Made by a program: the position numbers and the translations under genes. Under the pieces are notes generated by a model, which saw only the letters and a program-made list of their open reading frames with translations, did not search any database and was not told the origin of the DNA. This document shows, piece after piece, positions 1-12,200 of a stretch of 64,000 nt of DNA. Each line of letters begins with the position of its first letter. Positions within the stretch are counted from its first letter, which is position 1. The DNA is from Hormiphora californensis (Eukaryota > Animalia > Ctenophora): contig CM035352.1 of NCBI GenBank assembly GCA_020137815.1, forward strand, positions 6,882,001 through 6,946,000. The letters run 5' to 3'.

Positions 1-36
1 ACTCGGGATTCTGTCCAAAATTCTCAAATCTCAGCC

Positions 37-233
37 TCAAGACCGGGAAGTCTCAAGACCATGAAGATTTCTAACGTGAACTCGGAAATTATCCAGCCTG
101 TTCAGAATTTTTCCGCAAAGAGGACACTCGTATCGTTTTGGGGTCTGGTGGATGTTGGTGAGATGACGTTTCGCGGCTCCCGGGCAGCTGAACCGCTTGC
201 TGCAGATTTGGCACATCACTTTTTCTATGTAAC
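37..233 (-). CDS. Zinc-finger terminal exon 9 (two C2H2 fingers)
   Basis: TCTTTTACTAG|GT (phase 1). YIEKVMCQICSKRFSCPGAAKRHLTNIH...CPLCGKILNRLDNFRVHVRNLH, own stop. A further acceptor (TTTTGGACAG at 13-11) suggests the array runs off the window. Confidence 0.85.
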
Positions 234-348
234 CTAGTAAAAGATGTGTGCAAAAAATAAATAAAAACTAAATTAAGATGGGAATGTACACTCACTTTCT
301 AGCGAACAAATTAAATTGTTTATATTTTTTCAAGGAAAACTTTTTTCG

Positions 349-562
349 CTAAAGATCATAGTTTCTATGGTGGGCACGTCTGTAATGGTCTCTCAGAGTT
401 TCTTTACGAATGAATGTTTTCCGACAAATGGAACAGACAAAGTTTCTCTCTCTCAAATGAACCTCCTTGATATGTCGATTGATTTTCCATTTGCTGGCAT
501 TTTGGTAATCGCAGGAGGGGCATCCCTTCAACCGGACCTGGCACTGTGATCACCACCCAACA
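349..562 (-). CDS. Zinc-finger terminal exon 8 (two C2H2 fingers; needs one extra base near 531 to be in phase 1)
   Basis: CPSCDYQNASKWKINRHIKEVH...CSICRKTFIRKETLRDHYRRAH. Best acceptor is TTTGTGTGTGCAG at 565-563. As written the phase-1 frame hits TGA; one added T restores it. Confidence 0.7.
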
Positions 563-585
563 CTGCACACACAAACATACGGGTG

Positions 586-827
586 TTAGTCAACCATAAG
601 AACACCGGGAGGCAGTGGTTTGGCTGAACCGTTATGTACACTTCGCACGTGTCTCGCTAGGTTCTCATTTCTACTAAAAGTTTTCTCGCATATGTTACAC
701 TTGAATTGGCGTAGTTTTAGGTGGACTTCAGAGAGATGGCGACGAAGGGCTGCTTTGGGGACGGAAGAGCCCCCGGCTCCCCGGAACAGTGCCGTGCAAC
801 CCGGGTAGGGGCACCGCTGTACTGATT
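586..827 (-). CDS. Zinc-finger terminal exon 7 (two C2H2 fingers; absent from ORF track)
   Basis: TTTTTCTTCCAG|AA (phase 1). SVQRCPYPGCTALFRGAGGSSVPKAALRRHLSEVHLKLRQFKCNICEKTFSRNENLARHVRSVHNGSAKPLPPGVLMVD*. Confidence 0.85.
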
Positions 828-998
828 CTGGAAGAAAAATTAAAAACGATAAATGTATTGTGGGACGAATTTAAGAAGTGTATAGAATTACATTATAGAC
901 TAGTTACACACGTACAGACACTGTGCTATTCACTCTCTCTCTCTCGCTCATTAATTATATCTCGCAAGATTACATATGTCACCATTTAATTAAATTAA

Positions 999-1207
999 TC
1001 ACGGGAGGGGTGCTAGGCTGTGTGCAATAAATTGATGTCGTGTAAGAGTCTCTTTTCGTTTGAAAGAACAATGACAAAGATCACACGTAAAACGGCGCTG
1101 TTCAGTGTGCACTTCACGGATGTGTCTCTTCAAAATCCACCTTCGCCGGCTCACATTTCCCTTGGTATTCGCAAGGAAGGGGCAGTAGGGACATGGAATA
1201 CTATCAG
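999..1207 (-). CDS. Zinc-finger terminal exon 6 (two C2H2 fingers)
   Basis: CATATTTCAG|CT (phase 1). CPYCPF...LKRHIREVH...CDLCHCSFKRKETLTRHQFIAH, own stop. Confidence 0.85.
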
Positions 1208-1281
1208 CTGAAATATGGGACCAAGATATATATAACACTTTGTATGTGGACGCTCTAAATATTTAATATGTCACACTAAAT

Positions 1282-1448
1282 TTATTCGCTGTGGATATTT
1301 TGCATGTGTCTCTTTAGCACGTCTTTCCTAGCAAAAGCCTTTTGACAAAGTCTACAAATGTTCGATCGTTGATTAAGATGGCGGACCCGGATGTGACGGC
1401 GGAGGCCCGCTGAAGTACTGTAAACATTGTTACATATCTCACACACTA
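1282..1448 (-). CDS. Zinc-finger terminal exon 5 (two C2H2 fingers; absent from ORF track)
   Basis: ACATTTCAG|TA (phase 1). VCEICNNVYSTSAGLRRHIRVRHLNQRSNICRLCQKAFARKDVLKRHMQNIHSE*. The stop overlaps AATAAA. Confidence 0.85.
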
Positions 1449-1462
1449 CTGAAATGTTTATA

Positions 1463-1641
1463 TCATGAGGGGGTAGGAGGAGGGTGCTTCACACGCACGT
1501 GCCTATTCCGAACATCACTACGAGAAAATGATTTAGGACAATGCGGGCAGCAGTGGGACCGGACTTCGCTGTGTACAGTTTTTATATGCCGTCTCAGATC
1601 GCCAATTCGCTTCAGCACCTTGTTACACAGGGGGCACGGCC
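1463..1641 (-). CDS. Zinc-finger terminal exon 4 (two C2H2 fingers)
   Basis: TTATTCTCGCAG|GG (phase 1). PCPLCNKVLKRIGDLRRHIKTVH...CPHCPKSFSRSDVRNRHVRVKH, own stop. Confidence 0.85.
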
Positions 1642-1728
1642 CTGCGAGAATAATACGGGGGATCACTGAGTCTATGAGTTTTAGAAGTTGAGAGATCAGT
1701 TTAGAGGTGAAGTTGAGATCTACCCAGA

Positions 1729-1907
1729 TTAGAGTTGGACCTTGTGGACCACTTTAGCGTGTCTCGTTACACTGGATTTTCGTGTAAATTCCTTCTCGCA
1801 AATATGACATATAAATATATTCGATCGCTCGTGAACATCTTTTATGTGGTAGCTTAATCGGTGCTGGGACGGATATCGCTTGTGGCAGTGCGGGCATTCA
1901 AAGTCGC
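1729..1907 (-). CDS. Zinc-finger terminal exon 3 (two C2H2 fingers; absent from ORF track)
   Basis: CCTCCTTTTTCAG|GC (phase 1). DFECPHCHKRYPSQHRLSYHIKDVHERSNIFICHICEKEFTRKSSVTRHAKVVHKVQL*. Confidence 0.85.
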
Positions 1908-1988
1908 CTGAAAAAGGAGGAGGGGGAGAAATTTACCAAAAGTGTGCGGGGGACAATCTATGTTTGACAGGAGAAGTTGTGTGTGTTC

Positions 1989-2185
1989 CTACCTCCTGCG
2001 TCTTCCATCAATACTATGCATTACAGCCTGGTGCCTTGTCAGAGAGTTGAGGCGTGGGAAAGTTTTACAGCATATCTCACAAAGGTGGGTAATCTTCTGG
2101 TGTGCCTCCTTAATGTGGCGTCGGAGTGTGAAAGGAGAGGAGTATATCTTGTTACAGGTGTAACACTGTAATGTACCGTCCTGGC
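1989..2185 (-). CDS. Zinc-finger terminal exon 2 (two C2H2 fingers; absent from ORF track)
   Basis: CTCTCAACCAG|GC (phase 1). QDGTLQCYTCNKIYSSPFTLRRHIKEAHQKITHLCEICCKTFPRLNSLTRHQAVMHSIDGRRRR*. Confidence 0.85.
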
Positions 2186-2360
2186 CTGGTTGAGAGGTGA
2201 TCTAGCTCGCTCACAACACACAAAGGGAGAGGGAGAAAGAGGGTTGTGGAAAACAAAAAATACTGCTCTCTTTTGCGTAAAAACTAAACCAAATGTGTAC
2301 TACTTAAAAAACAGACCCATTCTCACACCCACAGTCATTCTTTCTCTCTCTCGTGTTTTT

Positions 2361-2506
2361 TCATCCCGTCCAAAAATGAGGATGTTGCTGCTTGAGGTGA
2401 CGCCTTAAGTTTTGAATTACATTCCGATTCCCCTTGAAGTACTTGCCACAGATGGTACAACACAGGCCCAATTTCTTGACCGACAAGGCAACTTTCTTGG
2501 CAGTCA
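2361..2506 (-). CDS. Zinc-finger terminal exon 1 (single BED-like finger)
   Basis: Acceptor CCCCATGCAG|TG (phase 1). CTICGKYFKGNRNVIQNLRRHLKQQHP followed by its own stop. Confidence 0.75.
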
Positions 2507-3540
2507 CTGCATGGGGGAGAGAGGGAGGGGAGAAAAGGAGCGAAATATATTCAGTTGTTCTAATTGTATCTTGTCTGTGTGTAACTACCACTCTTTCTCT
2601 CTCTCTCTGTTCTGTGCTCCCAAAAAAGGTCAAGGAGCAAGGCTGTGTGTGAGATGTGGCGGGCTGAGAGACTGCCACTTAGCCACACAAAGGGAAAGCC
2701 GCGCACAGGCCGCGCGCCCCTGGCTCACAACCCTCCACTTTATTTGTGTCCCGGCTACCAAATTTGCTAGTACCGAAGGGAGCCCGGGGGAGGTAATAAT
2801 GCCGCTCTGGAAACTTCTCCCCCCAAAGTAGTGGGAGAAAAAGGGGGGCAAGTTAGACACCACAGTCCACACAACACACAGATATATAATACACCACAAG
2901 AAAAATGTGAGGGGTATAAAGTGGTGATGTGATAAATAAAAGTATGGGAAATAAATATAACAATCACAAAAAACAGGAGTTATGAAAGGCGTCAAAACAC
3001 CCTGCATACACACACAAAGAACCCGGAATGTGTGTGTCGATTTGTGTTTTCTTCTCTTGTGTAAAGGGTGGGTCCCAAAAAAGATGTCTCTGGCACCACC
3101 CCAATCCGCATACGACCAGAGGAGAGGGAGATATAGAGATAGAGCTCATCATGTAGGGCACTAACTACGCACACACAAAAAAGATTCAAGATTAAAAGGA
3201 CCCTTCATCACATGTTCAGCATCGGGCACATCATGGAGAAAAAGAGAGATAACGAAAGAGAGAAAGGGAGAGAGAGAGAGAGATAATCATAACAAAAGGA
3301 CGAATTTTCCAAAATTAGGTCCCTATGCGTCCTACCTAACCTTAGGAGACCGGTGCAGCGGCAGAGGCAATGTGTGTGACACAATTGCAACTTTTGTCTA
3401 CCCTTACCTACGCAGGGGTGCTCAAGGGCAAAAGGCAGTCTATCAGTGGGTCTAGAGCACCAAATTTTATACAAGCTGTATCAGATAATTTAGCGTCGGG
3501 GGAGCACGACTTGGGGCCGACCTTGCAGACATGAGAGAGA

Positions 3541-3626
<86 letters not shown>

Positions 3627-4323
3627 TTGAGAGAGAAAGAGAGAAAGAGAGAGAGAGAAAGAGATAGTGGCATCAAAAAAGGGACCATATCATCACAAAA
3701 AAAAGAAATAAATGGCAGGTCGGCCCCTAAAATCAACCTGAATACACAAAAACACACTTTGTTCATTCAGGTTGTATATATTGGGGATGTGCGTGTACCG
3801 GCCTCAATCAATCAATAACGGACAGAAATACAACAACTTCACACACTGAAAATAGCACTCTTGCACCACTTACCTTCGTATTTCAGTAGAATAACGAACC
3901 CCCCACACACACATTCGGGGATAGTTGGTTGAGAGATAGAGATAGAGAGAGAGATGGTGTCTATTTGAAATCGGTAGAGAGAGAGGGATTCACACATTAC
4001 TCACTGTACATTTCGTCTCAACACTTTCCCAGCCCACACATTGCACTGTAGCACTTCCTTTTTTTACTCACATGCACATATTACACCGCACACACACAGC
4101 CCTTCCTTCTCTTTTTCTTTCAAATTTCTCCCTCACTTTACCGTTTCACTCACTTCTTCAAATAGTTCTCGTCTCTCTTCAAGTCTCTCACTCTCTACTC
4201 AAGGCATCCCATGTTTCTCACAGGCCAGTGTTACTCAGCTCACTCACACTTACAAGTCACACTTAGATCACTTACACAACACTCACACAGAGACACCGCA
4301 CCTGTCACAAACGAACACACGTT

Positions 4324-4413
<90 letters not shown>

Positions 4414-4715
4414 TTGGGCGCCAGTGTGAGAATCACCCATTGCCGCCGCGGTCTCTCACGAGTCACCTCAAAGACTTCCGCCGCCTGAGAGACCGCAACG
4501 GACAGAGGAAAAGAGAGAAAAATATTAGAAATGAAATGAGACAGAGAGAGAAGGTAAAATAAATAAAATGGTGGCAGGTACACGCACAGCCCCGGGGAGT
4601 ATTATAAAATACAGACAGAGAGGCCAGAGCCCCCAATTTAAAATTGGAGGCCCCGGCCCCACTCCCCATTATATAAACAAAGGGGTGAGGGGAACGACAA
4701 CGGGGCATGACTTAC

Positions 4716-4774
4716 TTGGATTGGTTTGTCCTTTCAAGTTCGATAAATTCAGTGCTGAGTCTCCGAGGTTTTTC
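4716..4774 (-). CDS. 59-nt adapter exon (phase 2 in, phase 1 out): (L)KNLGDSALNLSNLKGQTNP
   Basis: Flanked by CTTTCTCATATTCCAG| and |GTAAGT. Open in the frame set by the phase-2 donor at 7373 and exits in the phase needed by the zinc-finger cassettes. Confidence 0.7.
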
Positions 4775-5495
4775 CTGGAATATGAGAAAGGGATATGTTA
4801 GAGAGGGAGAAACAGAGAGAAAGAAAGGGGGGTGTCTTAGAGAGGGATAAAGGAGTGTGTTAGAGCGAGACGAGAGAGGGAGAAAGCTGTGAGATAAATA
4901 GGGAGAGCGAGACGAAAGGGAGAAAGGGAGAGTGAGAGACAGGGAGAGAAATGGGGGATGTGTTAGAGCGAGACGAGACACATGAGAGAGAAAAGTGTGT
5001 TAGAGGGAGCTGAGAGGGGTGTTGAGGAGGGAAGTGAAAAAGAAGAGCCACGTGGCGGTATGTAAGAGGGAGTCACAGGAGACCCTTCGCAGAGGTAAAC
5101 CAATTACCACTCACCCCCCAACCAGACCTTTTCTCCCCCTCCCTGTTTCAGACCCTCTTTCAACCCCTCCCTCCCTGTCTCGGACCCTCTGGCATCTACC
5201 CACCCCTACTGAATCACATCCTGTCCTCTAGGAGATGTGACATACATTGCAACTTTAGATCATAGAGCATGGACTATGCACCTGAGATGGATGGGGGTGT
5301 GACTGGAGATACGGAGTACCGTAATGTTTTCAGATATTGGAAAAGAAAGACATTCTCTCATAATATGGCGAATAAAGAACAGTTTACCCACAGTTTATGA
5401 AACTATCAGTGTAGTGTTCAAAAAATACTAATCGACACGAGATGTTTACTCTTGGTTTCATGCGGAATCATCATATCAATCTAAAACTATGTTGA

Positions 5496-5871
5496 TTAGT
5501 TTGATATTGGCATTCTATCACGGAAAGGTAACAGTTTCCCCTCACTAGCTAGTTTGGAAAGGACGCGTTTGTGTGACATGAGTTCCTCAGCACACATTTT
5601 TTGGAATTCAGCCGTGCTTTTGGAGATCTTGAAGAATCGTTTTGTAGTTTCACGGTCTACGATGTAAAGTTCTGCTACAGGACGATTCCTTGAGAAGTTT
5701 GAGTAGGACTTCCCTAACAGTTTGGTATGGCTAACATTATCCTTCTTGGACAACTCGAGGACGCTGCAATATTCTTCATAGCAGGATTCTGGAGTCCTAT
5801 TCCTTCTCTTGAAATGGAGACGATCCTCTGTGGAGGGCTCACGGGATACCTTGTTTCGTCGAGAATCGGGG
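5496..5871 (-). CDS. CCDC106-like terminal exon C
   Basis: Acceptor CTTCCCTCTCTTGCCGCAG|C (phase 2). Reads ...FKRRNRTPESCYEEYCSVLEL...RNRPVAELYIVDRE...EGKLLPF, resembling the CCDC106 C-terminal domain. Confidence 0.65.
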
Positions 5872-6070
5872 CTGCGGCAAGAGAGGGAAGTGGTAGATAG
5901 TGGTGTATAATTGTGGTCTTACATTATACCATTGCATAACACTCTATCTACCTGCTACCACTCCCTGACGTTTTTGATTTCGGTTTCTTTCTTACAAACT
6001 TTTGGAAAAAAATTAACCGATTTTTCAACCAACAACTAAATGATAACAAATGATTCAAACAAGTTCATTT

Positions 6071-6383
6071 CTAAGGATTGCGCCCAATTGCCTTCCCCTT
6101 CAAAACGAGAGTTCTCAACTTTGCAGCGATCTCCGCAGTCTTCAGTTCCTTAACGGCATATTTGGCCAGCTCCTGCTGCGTTTTACATGTCCGTGAGAGT
6201 TCTATATAAGTATCTGGAGCTGCTAGGGAAAGTTCAACTATCGCTTTCCTTCGGTAAAATCCAGCCTCATTAGTTTCAGTCCGAGTGATGACCTCTCTGA
6301 GACTTCTTCCTGATTGGATCTCTTTCAGGTAGTACTGGTATTCCTCGATTAGCTGTGCGTGAGTTAGACGTCTCCTCTTCACC
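6071..6383 (-). CDS. CCDC106-like terminal exon B
   Basis: 103-codon ORF with no Met. RRKAIVELSLAAPDTYIEL resembles the CCDC106 'PIAELLIVAPE' motif. Acceptor CCCCTAAG|G (phase 2). Confidence 0.65.
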
Positions 6384-6613
6384 CTTAGGGGGTAGGAGGG
6401 GGCTGTCAGGACTCAGGGAGTGGAGGCCATGAATGAAATTGTTAATTTACCAATCCAGTATATAATCCAATAATTACCACTGCATTTTTGATAATTGGAA
6501 AAGAAAGACACTTTCTATAATATTGTGAATAAAGAAACAATTTATGAATAAAACAAACAAAATTTTAGTGTTCATAAGGTGACAATGCAGAAAAGTTTTG
6601 AATGATTTCAAGT

Positions 6614-6942
6614 TCACTTCCGACGACGATTCCGTCCAATTGCCTTGCCCTCCGAAACGAGATCTCTCAACCGTGCAGCTATCTCTTCCGTCTTCAGTAT
6701 TTTAGCCGCCTTTCCTGGCCACCTCCAACTGAGTTGTACAGGTATTCAGCAGTTCCTTATAGAGACTTGGAGCCGCCAGGGAGAGCTCCACCATGGCTTT
6801 CCTTCTGTGAAACCCAGCCTCGTTAGTTTCTGTCCTTGTGATGATATTAATAAGGCTGCACCCAGACTTGACCTCCTTCAGGTAGTACTGGTATTCGGCC
6901 AACAGTTTCCCATAGTTTACGTTCAGGCGTCTCCTCTTCACC
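6614..6942 (-). CDS. CCDC106-like terminal exon A (one apparent +1 frameshift near 6711)
   Basis: KRRRLNVNYGKLLAEYQYYLKEVKSG...RRKAMVELSLAAPSLYKEL, continuing in another frame as AKILKTEEIAARLRDLVSEGKAIGRNRRRK*. Clear paralog of exon B. Acceptor CCTAAG|G (phase 2). CCDC106 similarity is from recalled motifs. Confidence 0.6.
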
Positions 6943-7372
6943 CTTAGGACAGGAGAGGGCTGTCAGGACTCAGGGAGTGGAGACGGAGACGGTTAGACCA
7001 TGGACGATAAGAAGATATTATTAGAGCGTGAAAAAGTGAGATGACATTGAATTCATATTACTTATTGGCTATTGCTCTATATATATTGAGAAATAGAAAT
7101 TGTGAATGCGGCTAGGACAATTAATAAAGCGAACATATAATGTGAACGTATCGTTTCGATATTTGATTATTAGTCGAATTCTGCAACTTTGCATAAATAT
7201 TGTGTAATCTGATTGTGTAATCTGATCAAAGCAAAGTGTTGATATGACCCCTACCCCCTCCAGGACGAATGCCAGGTTCCAATAAACTCTAACCCCTTTC
7301 CCTGTGACTTCCACCATAATCCCAAACATCCCCCTTACCCAAATTAAACCCTAAACAATCCCTAAAACTTAC

Positions 7373-8868
7373 AGAACATTGTCTGCCGACAGGTCGCTAG
7401 GTCCACCCGTATCATCAAGTGCCGCTCCGCTACTATTGAAGCTCCCCAACATCGACAACGGATTATTAGCACCGCGGTCCAGGAATGAGGGAGGAAGAGA
7501 GGATGGTGTGGCGGTGGGGATAAAGTTTTGTACTCCAACATTGTCATCGGTTCCGGAGATACTGCTCATGATTTGTTGGATTGTGTCGTGGGAAAGGAGG
7601 TCAGATGCACTTGTGTCAGCTTCATCCTCCTCCTTGATCTCAACAACCTGAGGGATGGATAATTGAGGGATAGGTAATTGAGGGAATAAGGATAGGTAAT
7701 TGAGGAATGAGGGATAGGTAATTGAGGGAATAGGGATAGGTAATTGAGGGATAGGTAATTGAGGGATAGGTAATTGAGGGTTAGGTAATTGAGGTAATTA
7801 GGTAATAGAGGGATAGGTAACAGAGGGAGTGTATCGTCAAACTAAATGAAAGACCACTTGTCGTGAAGCCTAATCTAGTTATATTTCATACCAAGTACCA
7901 CTGATAAAACAGAGGAACAAATTCACAAACCTCTGGTAGTGGGGCCTCGCTTTTAATTGATTCAGGAGCCTCTGCCACAGGCTGTACAACCATTGGTATA
8001 CTAGTCAGGGTGTTCTCGCTCGCTTGTCCGCCGGTACTATGCTGAGTTGATGGTAACTTTGCAGGCGGAGGGGGTGCAGTTCCTAACTCATCCTCTATGA
8101 TATGCGCTTTCTCGTTAATGATAGAGGGTGCAGAGGAGGAGGGAGTGATTTCCTCAGGTGGCTGATGGGCCGTGATATCATATTGGGGGGTTGAAGAGTA
8201 TCCGGGAGCTTGGTAGGAGGAGATTTGGGCGTTTGTTATCTCTCCAGTTATCTGCTCGAGTTCAGCGGAGAGAGCAGAGGGCTGAGGATCTAGCTCCATA
8301 TTAGTTGTTGCTGAAAGGGAGGGAGGGTTAAGGTTGTAATACTTCCCGCGAGATTAGAGATCCTATGAATACTTAATGAAGTTGTAGGAGTGATTGAAAA
8401 GTAAACCTGTGTCCCTGATGATGATGATGTGGTGGTCCGTGACTGTGAATATTTGCCAATGATCTGGTTTGAATGAGTGAAGAATTACCAGAAGCCGGAG
8501 AAGAGTTAGCTATTGCAGTCGCAGCAGCTACAACGGCTGCAGCGGGGGACATTTCTTCGTCAAGTTCCTCTGCACTCGCATCAGACACTGCCTCGATCAC
8601 CGGGGCCAGGTGTTGTACTGTAAAGGGATTGTTTTAGGGAGAGGCTAATATTTTAGAGAGAAAAGGGGGGTGGAGCTTAATAACACTTGTAGAACACCAC
8701 TCATGACTTACCAATAGAAATAACTCGGACAGCAGTATCAAGTAGAAACATAAGAAATTCATTGTCGGACTTCTGTTGGAAATGAAACTCCATCTTTTGT
8801 TTGAGATAGAAGTTGTGGACGTCATTGTTGTAGTAGATGGGAAGTGCAGAAGCTACTCCAGCGGCCAT
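7373..8868 (-). CDS. Common (constant) 5' coding exons of a putative multi-isoform DNA-binding protein gene: ex1 8868-8712, ex2 8617-~8407, ex3 8310-7931, ex4 7647-7373
   Basis: ATG at 8868 (MAAGVASALPIYYNNDVHNFYLKQKMEFHFQQKSDNEFLMFLLDTAVRVISI) ends at G|GTAAGT (phase 1). Acceptors are TTTACAG|, TTTCAG| and CCCTCAG|. Ex3 to ex4 is phase 0 and ex4 ends CT|GTAAGT (phase 2). The middle of the protein is an acidic/Pro/Ser/His-rich linker. The ex2/ex3 junction is off by one base (indel, or ex2 is itself an alternative exon). Confidence 0.75.
7658..7825. repeat. Intronic minisatellite (~17-nt GGGATAGGTAATTGA unit)
   Basis: About 8 degenerate tandem copies seen directly. Confidence 0.85.
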
Positions 8869-9244
8869 TTTATAGTCTACAGAAGTTCTAGAAAGGATGT
8901 TGGATTAGTGATGACAAATCAAACTCCAAACAAGTTTGAAGTTCAGGTGGGTGAAGGTCCAAACACTAAACAGTCGACAAGACAACGGTGGACGGCGATG
9001 AGAAACGTCTTCGCGAGCGAAACGAAAAAGTGAAAGGAGAGCGAGAAAATATTTTGAATTCAGTTTTTCGATTTTGAATTATTAATCGCGCGCGCGCGTG
9101 TAAGCCGCCGCGCCGCCTGGTTTTGCAGCGAAAGTATTAAGAATGAGCGCGTTACAACAAATTCAAACACTGAATCTAATTCTAAAACCGGTTAAGCAAT
9201 TAAAACACCTCACAAAACAATCTAAAAAGTACCCAACAATATTT

Positions 9245-12200
9245 TCACACTTCCTCTTCGTCTTGTCTCTCATTAAGGCGTGCCCGAAGCCCGGTAGAAT
9301 GCTGGAATGTAGCCCGACACAGGGGACATGTCGATTTACCACTGGTACTAAACCACTTGTAGAGGCAAGAACTGTGGAACTTCTTTTTGCACGTTCGGCA
9401 TGTTGGTTTTGGTAGCATTTTCTTGGGTCCTTGTACCTGTAAGGAGAGAAATTGAAAAAAGGTTTAACGATTGTTGTATACCAACGTTCACGGTCCGAGA
9501 TGGATTCAGATTGTATTGTCGGTTGTCGCGAGGCACAGTCCGACTTGTTACAGTACAGTTCTTACATTACGGGATTCTTTGAACAAGACAAGCTAGAGTC
9601 TATTCGCCGAGGGTTCGGTAGATCAAATTCAGGGTATCCTTGCTGCGTGCGACTGCGAGCTGACCCCTCCCTTCACTTACCACACTAAAACAGATCATAC
9701 AACTTTCAATTCCCTCAAACTGTTTATCCATATTTCCCTTCCAATGGGCCAGGGCATCATAGATCCTGCTGTTCTGGTTCTGGAATAGCGCTGTGATCTG
9801 GAGCATCCAGGATCTCCAGGTTCCAACTGGCACCCCTACCTGCCGTTCACAGCTCACAGAGGGGGCTACCAAGGGATGACTAAGGGGGGGGGGGTTGAGT
9901 GTCAGTGTGGATTAGTGGTAGCTTAAAAAGGAATTGATAACTTATCATATAAGTTATTAAAGTTGCTTACTTTGGTGCGATGACTACCAATAGATCTGCT
10001 GTTATGTCGTCCAACTCATAGCAAGCTAAAACCTCTCTCACTGCTGGACGGGGTTTCACCTGATAAAATGGAAAATATTTGTGAATGGTTTTCTTCAAAG
10101 GGTCCATCAAGATTTTGTTTTGGCATTGTTTCAAGTTGTTGAACTTTCAATGATGAAGTTGAATTGCGTGTGATCTGGGAGAGATCTCACTAGAAAACGC
10201 GCGTGCGCGCGAAGCCCCCTACTGAAATGTCACCGCCCCTACCTTCAACGTCCCGTCGTCTCCATCAGCAGCAGTGTCGAACTGAACATTGGTCTCCTGT
10301 TTGATCAGCCACGGCGAGAGGAACTTTGTCACAAACCGATCCACTGATTGGGATATTTCCTTGTTCTGTCTCTTCCACCAAGACCTGAGGAGCACGGGGA
10401 AAACCTCGGCAATCCCCATCAGACACTGTCCAGCTAACTGGGGCAAATCGGATGCTACGTCCTCCGAAAGAGCAGCCAAATTGGCAATGTTCTGGTTCCG
10501 ACCCTCAAAATCAATTAGGTAAACAAGGGAATCCAAGAAGTCACCTAAAATTCCCTTACTTCGTAGGTACTCCACATGTTCCCTAACTGTGTCCGGGCTA
10601 CAACACTTTAGTTCATGAAGCAGCATCAACAACCAGATTTGTATTTGACGAATCACCAATTCACTTTCCTCTAACTCGTCTAGGAAGACTCGTGGTGGTG
10701 ACTCGAAACCTTCCTCTTCCTCACCGTCTGGCACGATTTCAAAGAGTTGGAGACAGCGGGAGGTGTGACTGAATAAGACTTGGCCTGACTCAAAGGGTAG
10801 ATCATCATGATGCTGCTCCTTCATGAAGTATTGGAAGCATCGTTGGAATGTTGGCTTAGATCCAAGTTTCTTCTCCACAAACTCACTGACAGACTTGCCA
10901 GGTGCATCCAGGGCAATGGCCGAGATGTGTGGAGAAAGAGGGTGGAGGGAGTGAAGTTCAAGAACAAATTCCTGAATTCCTGGCTTGAAGAAATTCTCCC
11001 AATCCTCAACCAAATCGGCCAAATCATCTTCTTTGGAGCAGGTGATTTTATCCTGGAGACCAAAGTACAGAGACCGGAAAGCGGAAAATCCGACAAACAG
11101 GAAATAATCCTCGTTACACTCTTCCTCAGTTGAATAACTAAGGAAATACTCGGAGAGAGTTACAGCAGCACAAAGACAAGGGGTCAGGTCATCGAGTGTA
11201 GTCAGATTCGGTACAATGGCCGCAAGACCACGACTAACTTTAACCGCCAATTCTATCGTCAATGTTCCTTCCAGGAGATCACTTACAACTGCTGGTACCT
11301 CGCTTAGCTCGGAACAGCCGAGTGAGGCAAGTGGTGATGTATCAAGATCTGGTAGTAAAGATATTACAGATGATAGCTCCGATCCACTCGCCAGGAGGGC
11401 TGCAATAAGAACTGGAACATCTTGGTCTTTAGCCAACTTTAACAACTCCACCCTATCCCCTTCCTGCTCAATAGCCATGAGGCAGTGAGTGGTGCCAGAC
11501 ATTAGGAACTCTTGACATACAACACTGGGGAGAATTGACAATGCCTCCTGACAGTTTAATACCGCTGACACGCACTGACGGGTAAAGGTTTGCAGCAGTT
11601 CGTAGTGTGCTGTATCAGGTGAGATAGGAGGCCGAGGGTTGAGAGAGGGTGGTGGTGGGGAGAGAAGGATACCGTGTGCATCAAACAATTCAACAAGGAT
11701 TGAAACAGGAGCCTGCATGGTGGGCTGGAGTCCAGATAGGTAGGTCATGACAGGGCCCGGGGAATCCCCAAATACCTCACACAACACCTCCTTGTTGTCA
11801 AGGTGACAGATTTTAGTGATAACCAAGTTCCTGTAATCTGGTAGATCTGATACTACCTTCCTTAGCACCATACCCATACATCCAATGTTGTCAGTGGAGA
11901 GATGTTCTAGAAGAGAGGACACTGTTGTTTCACCTACAACAGACCAGTCAACGACCTCCATTAAATCAGCTACTTCCATCAGGTCCCCTTCTTCTACTGT
12001 GTCCCTAACAATGTTGATCAGATGTTCGGTTATATCTGGTCGGTTTATACGAGCTAAATCCCTCACTAACTCCCTTTCTTTAGTCAGCTCTAGAAGTAGG
12101 TCTGTAGGTAGTATCTCCTCTCCCCGTTCTATTTCTGCACGTATAAAAACACTGGCAGCGGCAACCCGGAACTGTTGCTCACTCACATCAACCAAAGTTG

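Follow-up and report, generated by a model that had tools for sequence, protein, structure and literature searches.

A probable multi-cassette transcription-factor gene with alternative DNA-binding last exons in the ctenophore Hormiphora californensis

The question raised by this locus is whether a single ctenophore gene could make many transcription factors, which share one N-terminus and differ in their DNA-binding C-termini. The textbook examples of such genes, lola, mod(mdg4) and fruitless, come from insects and are tied to one arthropod BTB group. The stretch of DNA analysed here, called the window, comprises 64,000 nucleotides (nt) of the genome of Hormiphora californensis (contig CM035352.1; C3:6882001-6946000). 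In addition, 30 kb past window base 1 were added to the analysis, and positions in that DNA are given as negative window coordinates. The locus lies on the minus strand, spans approximately 21.7 kb (C3:6869183-6890868) and reaches approximately 12.8 kb past window base 1. We consider it very probable that this is one transcription-factor gene, which gives many proteins by a choice among alternative last exons, here called cassettes. Five constant exons (e1-e5) would supply a short N-terminal domain, helical in structure, with a long disordered linker after it, and the fifth of them, an adaptor exon of 59 nt, would turn the reading phase from 2 to 1. The donor of the adaptor exon (...CCA A/GT, the slash marking the exon end) would be joined to one of approximately 38 downstream acceptors, and each mRNA would then carry one DNA-binding module, on a cassette ending in its own stop. 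Cassettes of a second, CCDC106-like kind could be reached by two routes: cassettes A-C, being in phase 2, could join e4 directly, and cassettes D-E, which lie past the adaptor exon, could use plausible phase-1 acceptors.

Constant exons and their RNA joints

The constant part was followed in RNA contigs from a seawater metatranscriptome, X1, which were 95-99% identical to the window; the alignment covered window positions 4450-8900 only. Four GT..AG joints on the minus strand were present in these contigs (8712>8617, 8489>8310, 7931>7647 and 7373>4774). They connect five exons of 1000 nt in total, i.e., 333 codons and one base, the final base being A and the phase out being 1. On translation, all five exons were open in the phases set by these joints. 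The original prediction, which was made from the letters of the window, had proposed four common coding exons ending in a phase-2 donor, CT/GTAAGT, at 7373; this donor and the minus-strand coordinates held on re-reading and translation. The four coding exons stood as well, with one correction. The obvious candidate for the e2 donor, at 8407, breaks the reading frame and was discarded, since the RNA contigs use 8489 instead. Given this RNA-supported donor, the His-rich stretch is intronic.

The adaptor exon had also been proposed, as a 59-nt exon converting phase 2 to phase 1, together with junctions from 7373 to acceptors at 4774, 6942, 6383 and 5871. The joint 7373>4774 was recovered in the RNA contigs, and none of the other three was seen in X1 within the aligned part. 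The contig with the adaptor exon consists of 150 nt of e4 followed by exactly 59 nt, and it ends at 4716, as would be expected of a graph assembler at a branch point.

One X1 contig extends by 18 nt at window 8741 (ACTTTTCAACACTACTTT, plus strand), and these nucleotides are identical to an internal segment of the spliced leader published for Hormiphora californensis (PMC8527503). It is antisense to the gene and its junction is not at an AG; the contig is probably chimeric. The leader piece itself shows that X1 contains RNA from a Hormiphora-like ctenophore.

The array of cassettes

Stop-terminated open frames bearing C2H2 fingers were counted on both strands. There were 38 of them on the minus strand, nine in the window and 29 beyond it, down to -11838, as against 4 loose regular-expression matches to a finger on the opposite strand. 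These zinc-finger (ZF) cassettes have a length of 47-100 codons, and most contain a pair of C2H2 fingers followed by their own stop. All 38 frames are uninterrupted from acceptor to stop, with the finger ligands intact. The recognition-helix residues, as far as they can be assigned approximately, are distinct in all 38 cassettes, and the pairwise identity of the cores has a median of 37%. We infer that the modules bind different DNA sites and that every cassette of this genome is used. A single long poly-zinc-finger gene was also considered and was ruled out, as a stop ends every cassette and no donors are found before the stops.

Finger motifs are present in all 38 frames, and Pfam searches returned C2H2 fingers in all nine ZF cassettes of the window. 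In eight of the nine the C2H2 match (PF00096/PF13894; C-X2-4-C-X12-H-X3-5-H) is above the Pfam cut-off, with E-values from 1e-6 to 1e-11. The top Pfam score of ZF cassette 1 (acceptor 2506) is that of zf-BED, 26.4 bits against a cut-off of 20.6. With zf-C2H2 and zf-C2H2_4 matches above cut-off, the window cassettes include DNA-binding modules of a kind used in the variable exons of lola-type genes (C2H2 pair or FLYWCH).

Acceptors were scored as the best YAG within 90 nt upstream of the first finger. This best acceptor was in phase 1 in 32 of the 38 ZF frames (binomial p = 1.4e-10 versus 1/3), and no in-frame Met was found before the fingers in 28 of the 38. Both counts bear on an explanation of another kind, in which the cassettes are separate small genes, each receiving a spliced leader at its acceptor, in an operon-like dense array behind an unrelated gene. 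The leader is carried by at least 56% of the Iso-Seq reads of Hormiphora californensis (PMC8527503), and no cassette lacks an acceptor or a stop of its own, which would suit separate genes. However, the 28 cassettes have no in-frame Met before their fingers and the published leader has no ATG (PMC8527503); leader acceptors need no fixed phase, whereas phase 1 is kept by 32 of the 38 here; and the constant part is joined to cassettes in the orthologous proteins described below. Separate genes are for these reasons a very improbable explanation, and we return to a single gene with alternative last exons.

As regards the array, the original prediction had counted at least 12 downstream cassettes, each with its own acceptor, module and stop. 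These were found again in an array that proved larger, with 38 ZF and five CCDC106-like cassettes. Its three CCDC106-like cassettes with phase-2 acceptors and its nine ZF cassettes, eight of them with phase-1 acceptors, are all listed in Table 1, cassette A being frameshifted, and for its remark that almost no cassette has a usable start codon, the count stands at 28 of the 38 ZF frames.

The five CCDC106-like cassettes are interspersed at the locus, A-C before the adaptor exon and D-E after it. Their phase tracks the side of the 59-nt exon on which they lie, phase 2 before it and phase 1 after it, which fits the proposed conversion of phase by this exon. The five copies and one tail from Mnemiopsis can be aligned over approximately 95 residues. 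The C-terminal part of the Pfam CCDC106 profile (PF15794) was matched by four of eight related cassette sequences, the best at E=7e-6; cassette B itself gave E=0.011 and 16 bits, which is under the cut-off of 30.2 bits. A structure model of cassette B has six helices, with a predicted local distance difference test (pLDDT) value of 90 and a predicted template modelling (pTM) score of 0.80. Foldseek returned no match for it at E<=0.001. The top match in VIA was the LEAFY DNA-binding domain (4bhk_A; a modest Z of 7.7, root-mean-square deviation 3.4, 101 of 103 residues aligned), 2.7 above the next match and followed by the helix-turn-helix (HTH) domains of KorB, SopB, ParB, VirB and CENP-B at Z 3.6-4.5, although by the tool's own caution such Z values may mirror no more than a common helix arrangement. 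From this model it is reasonable to suppose that the CCDC106-like cassettes may bind DNA.

Relatives of cassette B, 86-91% identical, were present in ENA contigs. The search with cassette B gave just two short open reading frames, both from the same GTG, and was uninformative on splicing. In cassette A, the last 31 codons (AKILKTEEIAARLRDLVSEGKAIGRNRRRK) are in another frame, at 6709-6614, past a premature TAA.

Orthologues and the weighing of the evidence

Orthologues were searched for with a profile built from the exon-1 peptide together with its paralogues in the genome, which gave 47 protein clusters. One of these, P0012 (472 amino acids (aa), from a transcript contig of 1496 nt), contains the equivalents of e1-e4, the adaptor peptide, a finger pair and a stop. 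The search with P0012 led to the RefSeq gene LOC134813369 of Bolinopsis microptera and to proteins of Mnemiopsis leidyi. The identity between the window exons and the orthologues was, in order, 83% for e1, 62% for e2, 36% for e3, 60-64% for e4 and 58% for the adaptor exon.

The isoform names of LOC134813369 run to X34 in the RefSeq cluster listing. All 21 Bolinopsis isoforms examined have an identical prefix of 373 aa ending in ...KNISDAGLNVSSIKGQANP, the adaptor peptide, and all of their tails are different, with two or three fingers in 20 of the 21. Each tail begins with I, T, N, K, S or R, i.e., with a codon whose first base is A, and in both phase (phase 1) and base the junction is thus that of the window. 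In Mnemiopsis three tails were found, P0052, P0055 and P0087. The last of these (KAL5264987.1) is CCDC106-like, and cassette C matches its tail at E=3.5e-8; a protein search with this tail returned no proteins that carry it. A metatranscriptome contig from JGI, L035, has the constant region of P0012 with a different tail. There is no further cassette in its 3' untranslated region, which hence gives no evidence on read-through to downstream cassettes. Different joined tails were in this way obtained from three independent sources, Logan, JGI and MetaClust/NCBI. The central claim of the original prediction, one constant N-terminus with many C-termini, is met with in the Bolinopsis and Mnemiopsis proteins, where the tails are joined exactly after the adaptor peptide.

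Single tails could also be paired with single cassettes of this genome. The Bolinopsis X16 tail matches the cassette at window -10879 with 65% identity, X17 pairs with window 1205 at 56%, and Mnemiopsis P0052 pairs with window 1645 at 49%. Some single cassettes are thus recognisably orthologous between the species.

A JGI contig from another ctenophore, L036 (Ga0314705_10124112), contains the adaptor peptide, a short tail and a stop. After the stop there is an open frame of 196 aa in another frame, with seven TGEKP-linked fingers. This form could be a retained or mis-spliced one, or it could represent another kind of cassette.

Several observations weigh against a single gene with alternative last exons. 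The joins of constant part to ZF cassette were seen in the orthologues; in this genome no joint into a ZF cassette was observed, the RNA alignment having covered 4450-8900. Within the aligned part, the sole X1 joint out of 7373 goes to the adaptor exon at 4774, and no X1 contig was found on cassettes A-C. The isoforms of LOC134813369 are automatic RefSeq models, named 'uncharacterized protein'. The CCDC106-like tail of Mnemiopsis comes after the adaptor exon, an order that is impossible here for cassettes A-C; either the species differ in order or the Mnemiopsis model is imperfect. The best acceptor is not in phase 1 in six of the 38 ZF cassettes, and given these six and the frameshifted cassette A, some of the copies may be dead. 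Finally, most cassette stops have no canonical AATAAA or ATTAAA in the 400 nt after them (array from 2364 to -11838), and some cassette acceptors follow the preceding stop by only 18 nt.

If decay had gone further, few of the cassettes would be functional, the rest would be decaying duplicated exons, and the Bolinopsis isoforms would have been over-predicted by the annotation pipeline. The signs of decay are the frameshift in cassette A, the six cassettes without a best phase-1 acceptor, the 549 cassette, which has no phase-1 acceptor, and the cassette at -9558, which is a truncated duplicate of that at -9778; the missing ZF joins among the observed joints are also in keeping with it. However, all 38 frames are open with intact ligands, specific cassettes are 49-65% identical to those of lobate ctenophores against approximately 37% among themselves, and each of the three sources named above yielded different joined tails. 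A mostly dead array is unlikely in view of the open frames and the conservation at the level of cassettes, and we give this explanation as a whole little credence.

The lack of canonical poly(A) signals at most cassettes and the very tight packing could also be accounted for if the variable exons were joined by trans-splicing of separate pre-mRNAs and not in cis, a route taken in mod(mdg4) and, in part, in lola. Ctenophores have an active trans-splicing machinery (PMC8527503), and the constant and variable exons of lola can be joined in trans (PMC1947980). Here, however, the whole set of cassettes follows the constant exons in order and on one strand, and cis-splicing would be enough; in any case the route of joining would be altered, not the product. 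We regard trans-splicing as unlikely, though the data would fit either route, and one gene with alternative last exons is kept as the preferred reading.

The surroundings of the locus are as follows. Upstream on the same strand is the C-terminus of a gene with a RING-type finger (window 9245-9418 and upstream, minus strand), which has the look of a listerin-like E3 ligase. The gap between the stop of this gene (approximately 9245) and the ATG at 8868 is only about 370 nt. The downstream neighbour, also on the minus strand, is an open frame for a HAD-like hydrolase (-12841..-13629), and past it a histone gene cluster, with H2B-, H4-, H2A- and H1-like open frames on both strands, continues to about -30000. 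Repeats were observed at three places within the locus. Two long (CT)n microsatellites (window 3540-3660 and 4330-4425) are in the 2.2-kb intron that separates ZF cassette 1 from the adaptor exon, and a tandem repeat with a unit of approximately 16 nt (CCCTCAATTACCTAT...) is in intron 3 (window 7660-7810). The duplicated cassettes at -9558 and -9778, which share the same acceptor context, flank an insertion with repeated 'FGSVRFGSV' open frames (about -8215 to -10074); a recent duplication may have taken place here, or a repeat element may sit within the array. As to single cassettes, ZF cassette 8 is possibly decayed or used in another way.

Table 1. Coordinates of the constant exons, the cassettes and the further genomic copies of the exon-1 domain. 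Positions are window coordinates unless a contig is given.
Feature	Position	Strand	Remarks
Constant exon 1 (e1)	8712..8868	-	ATG at 8868, upstream in-frame stop; donor G/GTAAGT; phase out 1
Constant exon 2 (e2)	8489..8617	-	donor CTG/GTAATT; phase 1 in, phase 1 out; joints 8712>8617, 8489>8310
Constant exon 3 (e3)	7931..8310	-	low-complexity linker; joints 8489>8310, 7931>7647; colinear with orthologues
Constant exon 4 (e4)	7373..7647	-	donor CT/GTAAGT; phase out 2; joints 7931>7647, 7373>4774
59-nt adaptor exon (e5)	4716..4774	-	peptide KNLGDSALNLSNLKGQTNP; phase 2 in, phase 1 out; donor A/GTAAGT; joint 7373>4774
CCDC106-like cassette A	6702..6942	-	phase-2 acceptor (6942); 79 aa; shortened by 1-nt frameshift relative to B
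CCDC106-like cassette B	6071..6383	-	phase-2 acceptor (6383); 103 aa; own stop
CCDC106-like cassette C	5496..5871	-	phase-2 acceptor (5871); 124 aa; own stop
CCDC106-like cassette D	about -2378..-2806	-	plausible phase-1 acceptor -2433
CCDC106-like cassette E	about -12120..-12818	-	plausible phase-1 acceptor -12379
ZF cassette 1	2361..2506	-	one finger (zf-BED/C2H2-like); phase-1 acceptor (2506); own stop
ZF cassette 2	1989..2185	-	two C2H2 fingers; phase-1 acceptor (2185); own stop
ZF cassette 3	1729..1907	-	two C2H2 fingers; phase-1 acceptor (1907); own stop
ZF cassette 4	1463..1641	-	two C2H2 fingers; phase-1 acceptor (1641); own stop; 49% identity to Mnemiopsis P0052 tail
ZF cassette 5	1282..1448	-	two C2H2 fingers; phase-1 acceptor (1448) 18 nt past cassette-4 stop
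ZF cassette 6	999..1207	-	two fingers; phase-1 acceptor (1207); own stop; 56% identity to Bolinopsis X17 tail
ZF cassette 7	586..827	-	two fingers; phase-1 acceptor (827); own stop
ZF cassette 8	349..549	-	two fingers (frame 549-352); phase-0 AGs only (543, 537)
ZF cassette 9	37..233	-	two fingers; phase-1 acceptor (233); own stop; array continues past window base 1
Further exon-1-domain paralogue	C10:5279916-5280059
Further exon-1-domain paralogue	C10:1447047-1447169
Further exon-1-domain paralogue	C5:5720439-5720567
Further exon-1-domain paralogue	C10:2128879-2128995
Further exon-1-domain paralogue	C10:7364888-7365016
Further exon-1-domain paralogue	C5:8335822-8335956
Further exon-1-domain paralogue	C13:3872167-3872292

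The N-terminal domain, its gene family and known systems

Most of the conserved N-terminal helical domain is encoded by e1. Pfam gave no family for e1-e4 or for eight paralogous N-terminal exons, even at E-values up to 10. The domain has a length of approximately 60 aa and was modelled on a paralogue (L026:1852-2085), where a short helix was predicted to be followed, after a loop, by a long one, with a pLDDT of approximately 90 for residues 11-60. This two-helix hairpin is not the BTB fold, and the absence of a BTB domain, as originally predicted, was borne out by both the Pfam search and the model. In structure searches with the domain, Foldseek gave nothing at E<=0.001, and VIA gave generic dimerising helical hairpins (best Z 5.2) and no specific PDB match. 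The hAT dimerisation domain (PF05699) was rejected as a candidate, as an atlas score of 0.88 and 111-117 features in common do not rise above chance level and there was no Pfam match at E up to 10. The hairpin may mediate self-association or another protein-protein contact.

The exon-1 peptide has eight paralogues in this genome. The one that was modelled is intronless and reads ...SIAHQLTPVIEAV straight across the e1/e2 join, which supports this join. Seven further paralogues are listed in Table 1, and several of them are followed on the same strand by C2H2 fingers, at a distance of 1-18 kb downstream. The domain was also found at the start of P0032 and P0038, both with several fingers, and, according to precomputed Pfam domains, together with a SIX-type homeodomain in P0017 from ENA. 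A second Bolinopsis gene, LOC134821797, has a constant part of 461 aa and four tails, three with fingers and one, X4, basic-rich and resembling a basic leucine zipper (bZIP). Its counterpart in this genome (C10:2231359-2246235, minus strand) shares the N-terminal domain, which is followed downstream by three cassettes with finger pairs, and each of these cassettes matches a different LOC134821797 tail (X1, X2 and X3) with 62-78% identity. As this paralogous locus repeats the design, the design is a trait of the gene family and not of one locus.

Alternative C-terminal DNA-binding exons, FLYWCH or C2H2, are found in the arthropod BTB genes mod(mdg4), fruitless, broad and tramtrack. The exons of mod(mdg4) are on both strands and are joined by obligatory trans-splicing. 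The locus described here would resemble these four genes in setting alternative terminal exons behind a single N-terminal part, which serves oligomerisation in those genes and may do so here, and it differs from mod(mdg4) in that all cassettes are on one strand. In lola, constant 5' exons are joined to one of approximately 20 alternative 3' exons; a stop closes each of these, most encode one or two zinc fingers, and the resulting isoforms differ in their DNA-binding ends (PMC1947980). The likeness to lola would lie in the constant part combined with alternative DNA-binding ends, one donor here being followed by approximately 38 ZF cassettes, most of them finger pairs. Whereas lola has a BTB/POZ domain in its constant part, neither BTB nor any other Pfam family was found in the constant part here. 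Since BTB is absent, the locus is not a member of the lola gene group, and the likeness is in design only. Compared with lola, the cassettes are packed much more tightly, there is a 59-nt adaptor exon that sets the phase, and modules of a second, DNA-binding-like class are found among them. The vertebrate CCDC106 family (PF15794) is similar to this second class by the profile match to its C-terminal part; here the module stands alone as a terminal exon of a multi-isoform gene. LOC134813369 and KAL5264987.1 / UPI0004EA9D47 are true orthologues, with the same adaptor peptide and the same base at the phase-1 junction, and they exist as database models without description. In the literature we found no description of a lola-like or multi-cassette ZF locus in ctenophores, nor of LOC134813369; subscription journals were mostly outside this search, and the absence is not proof.

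Because the N-terminus is unrelated, an origin independent of the arthropod BTB-ZF genes can reasonably be inferred from the sequences. The same design would then stand on an unrelated and so far undescribed N-terminal domain, with approximately twice the number of cassettes of lola and with an exon devoted to the change of phase; the design is conserved across distant ctenophores, and a paralogous locus repeats it on a small scale. A wider proposal is made tentatively, and we hold it to be possible and somewhat doubtful: that ctenophores independently evolved a modular transcription-factor family of their own, in which a ctenophore-specific N-terminal helical, perhaps dimerising, domain defines the family and is combined, by splicing to alternative terminal exons, with one of up to approximately 40 cassettes (C2H2 pairs, CCDC106-like HTH modules and, in a paralogue, a tail like the basic region of bZIP proteins), that since the split of cydippids and lobates the array has been maintained at the level of single cassettes, and that it serves as a combinatorial system of cell identity. 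The locus would be a clear case of convergent evolution in the multiplying of transcription-factor specificities from one gene. It bears on the specification of cell types in ctenophores, and if one gene makes approximately 40 factors, the counts of transcription factors in ctenophores would be underestimates.

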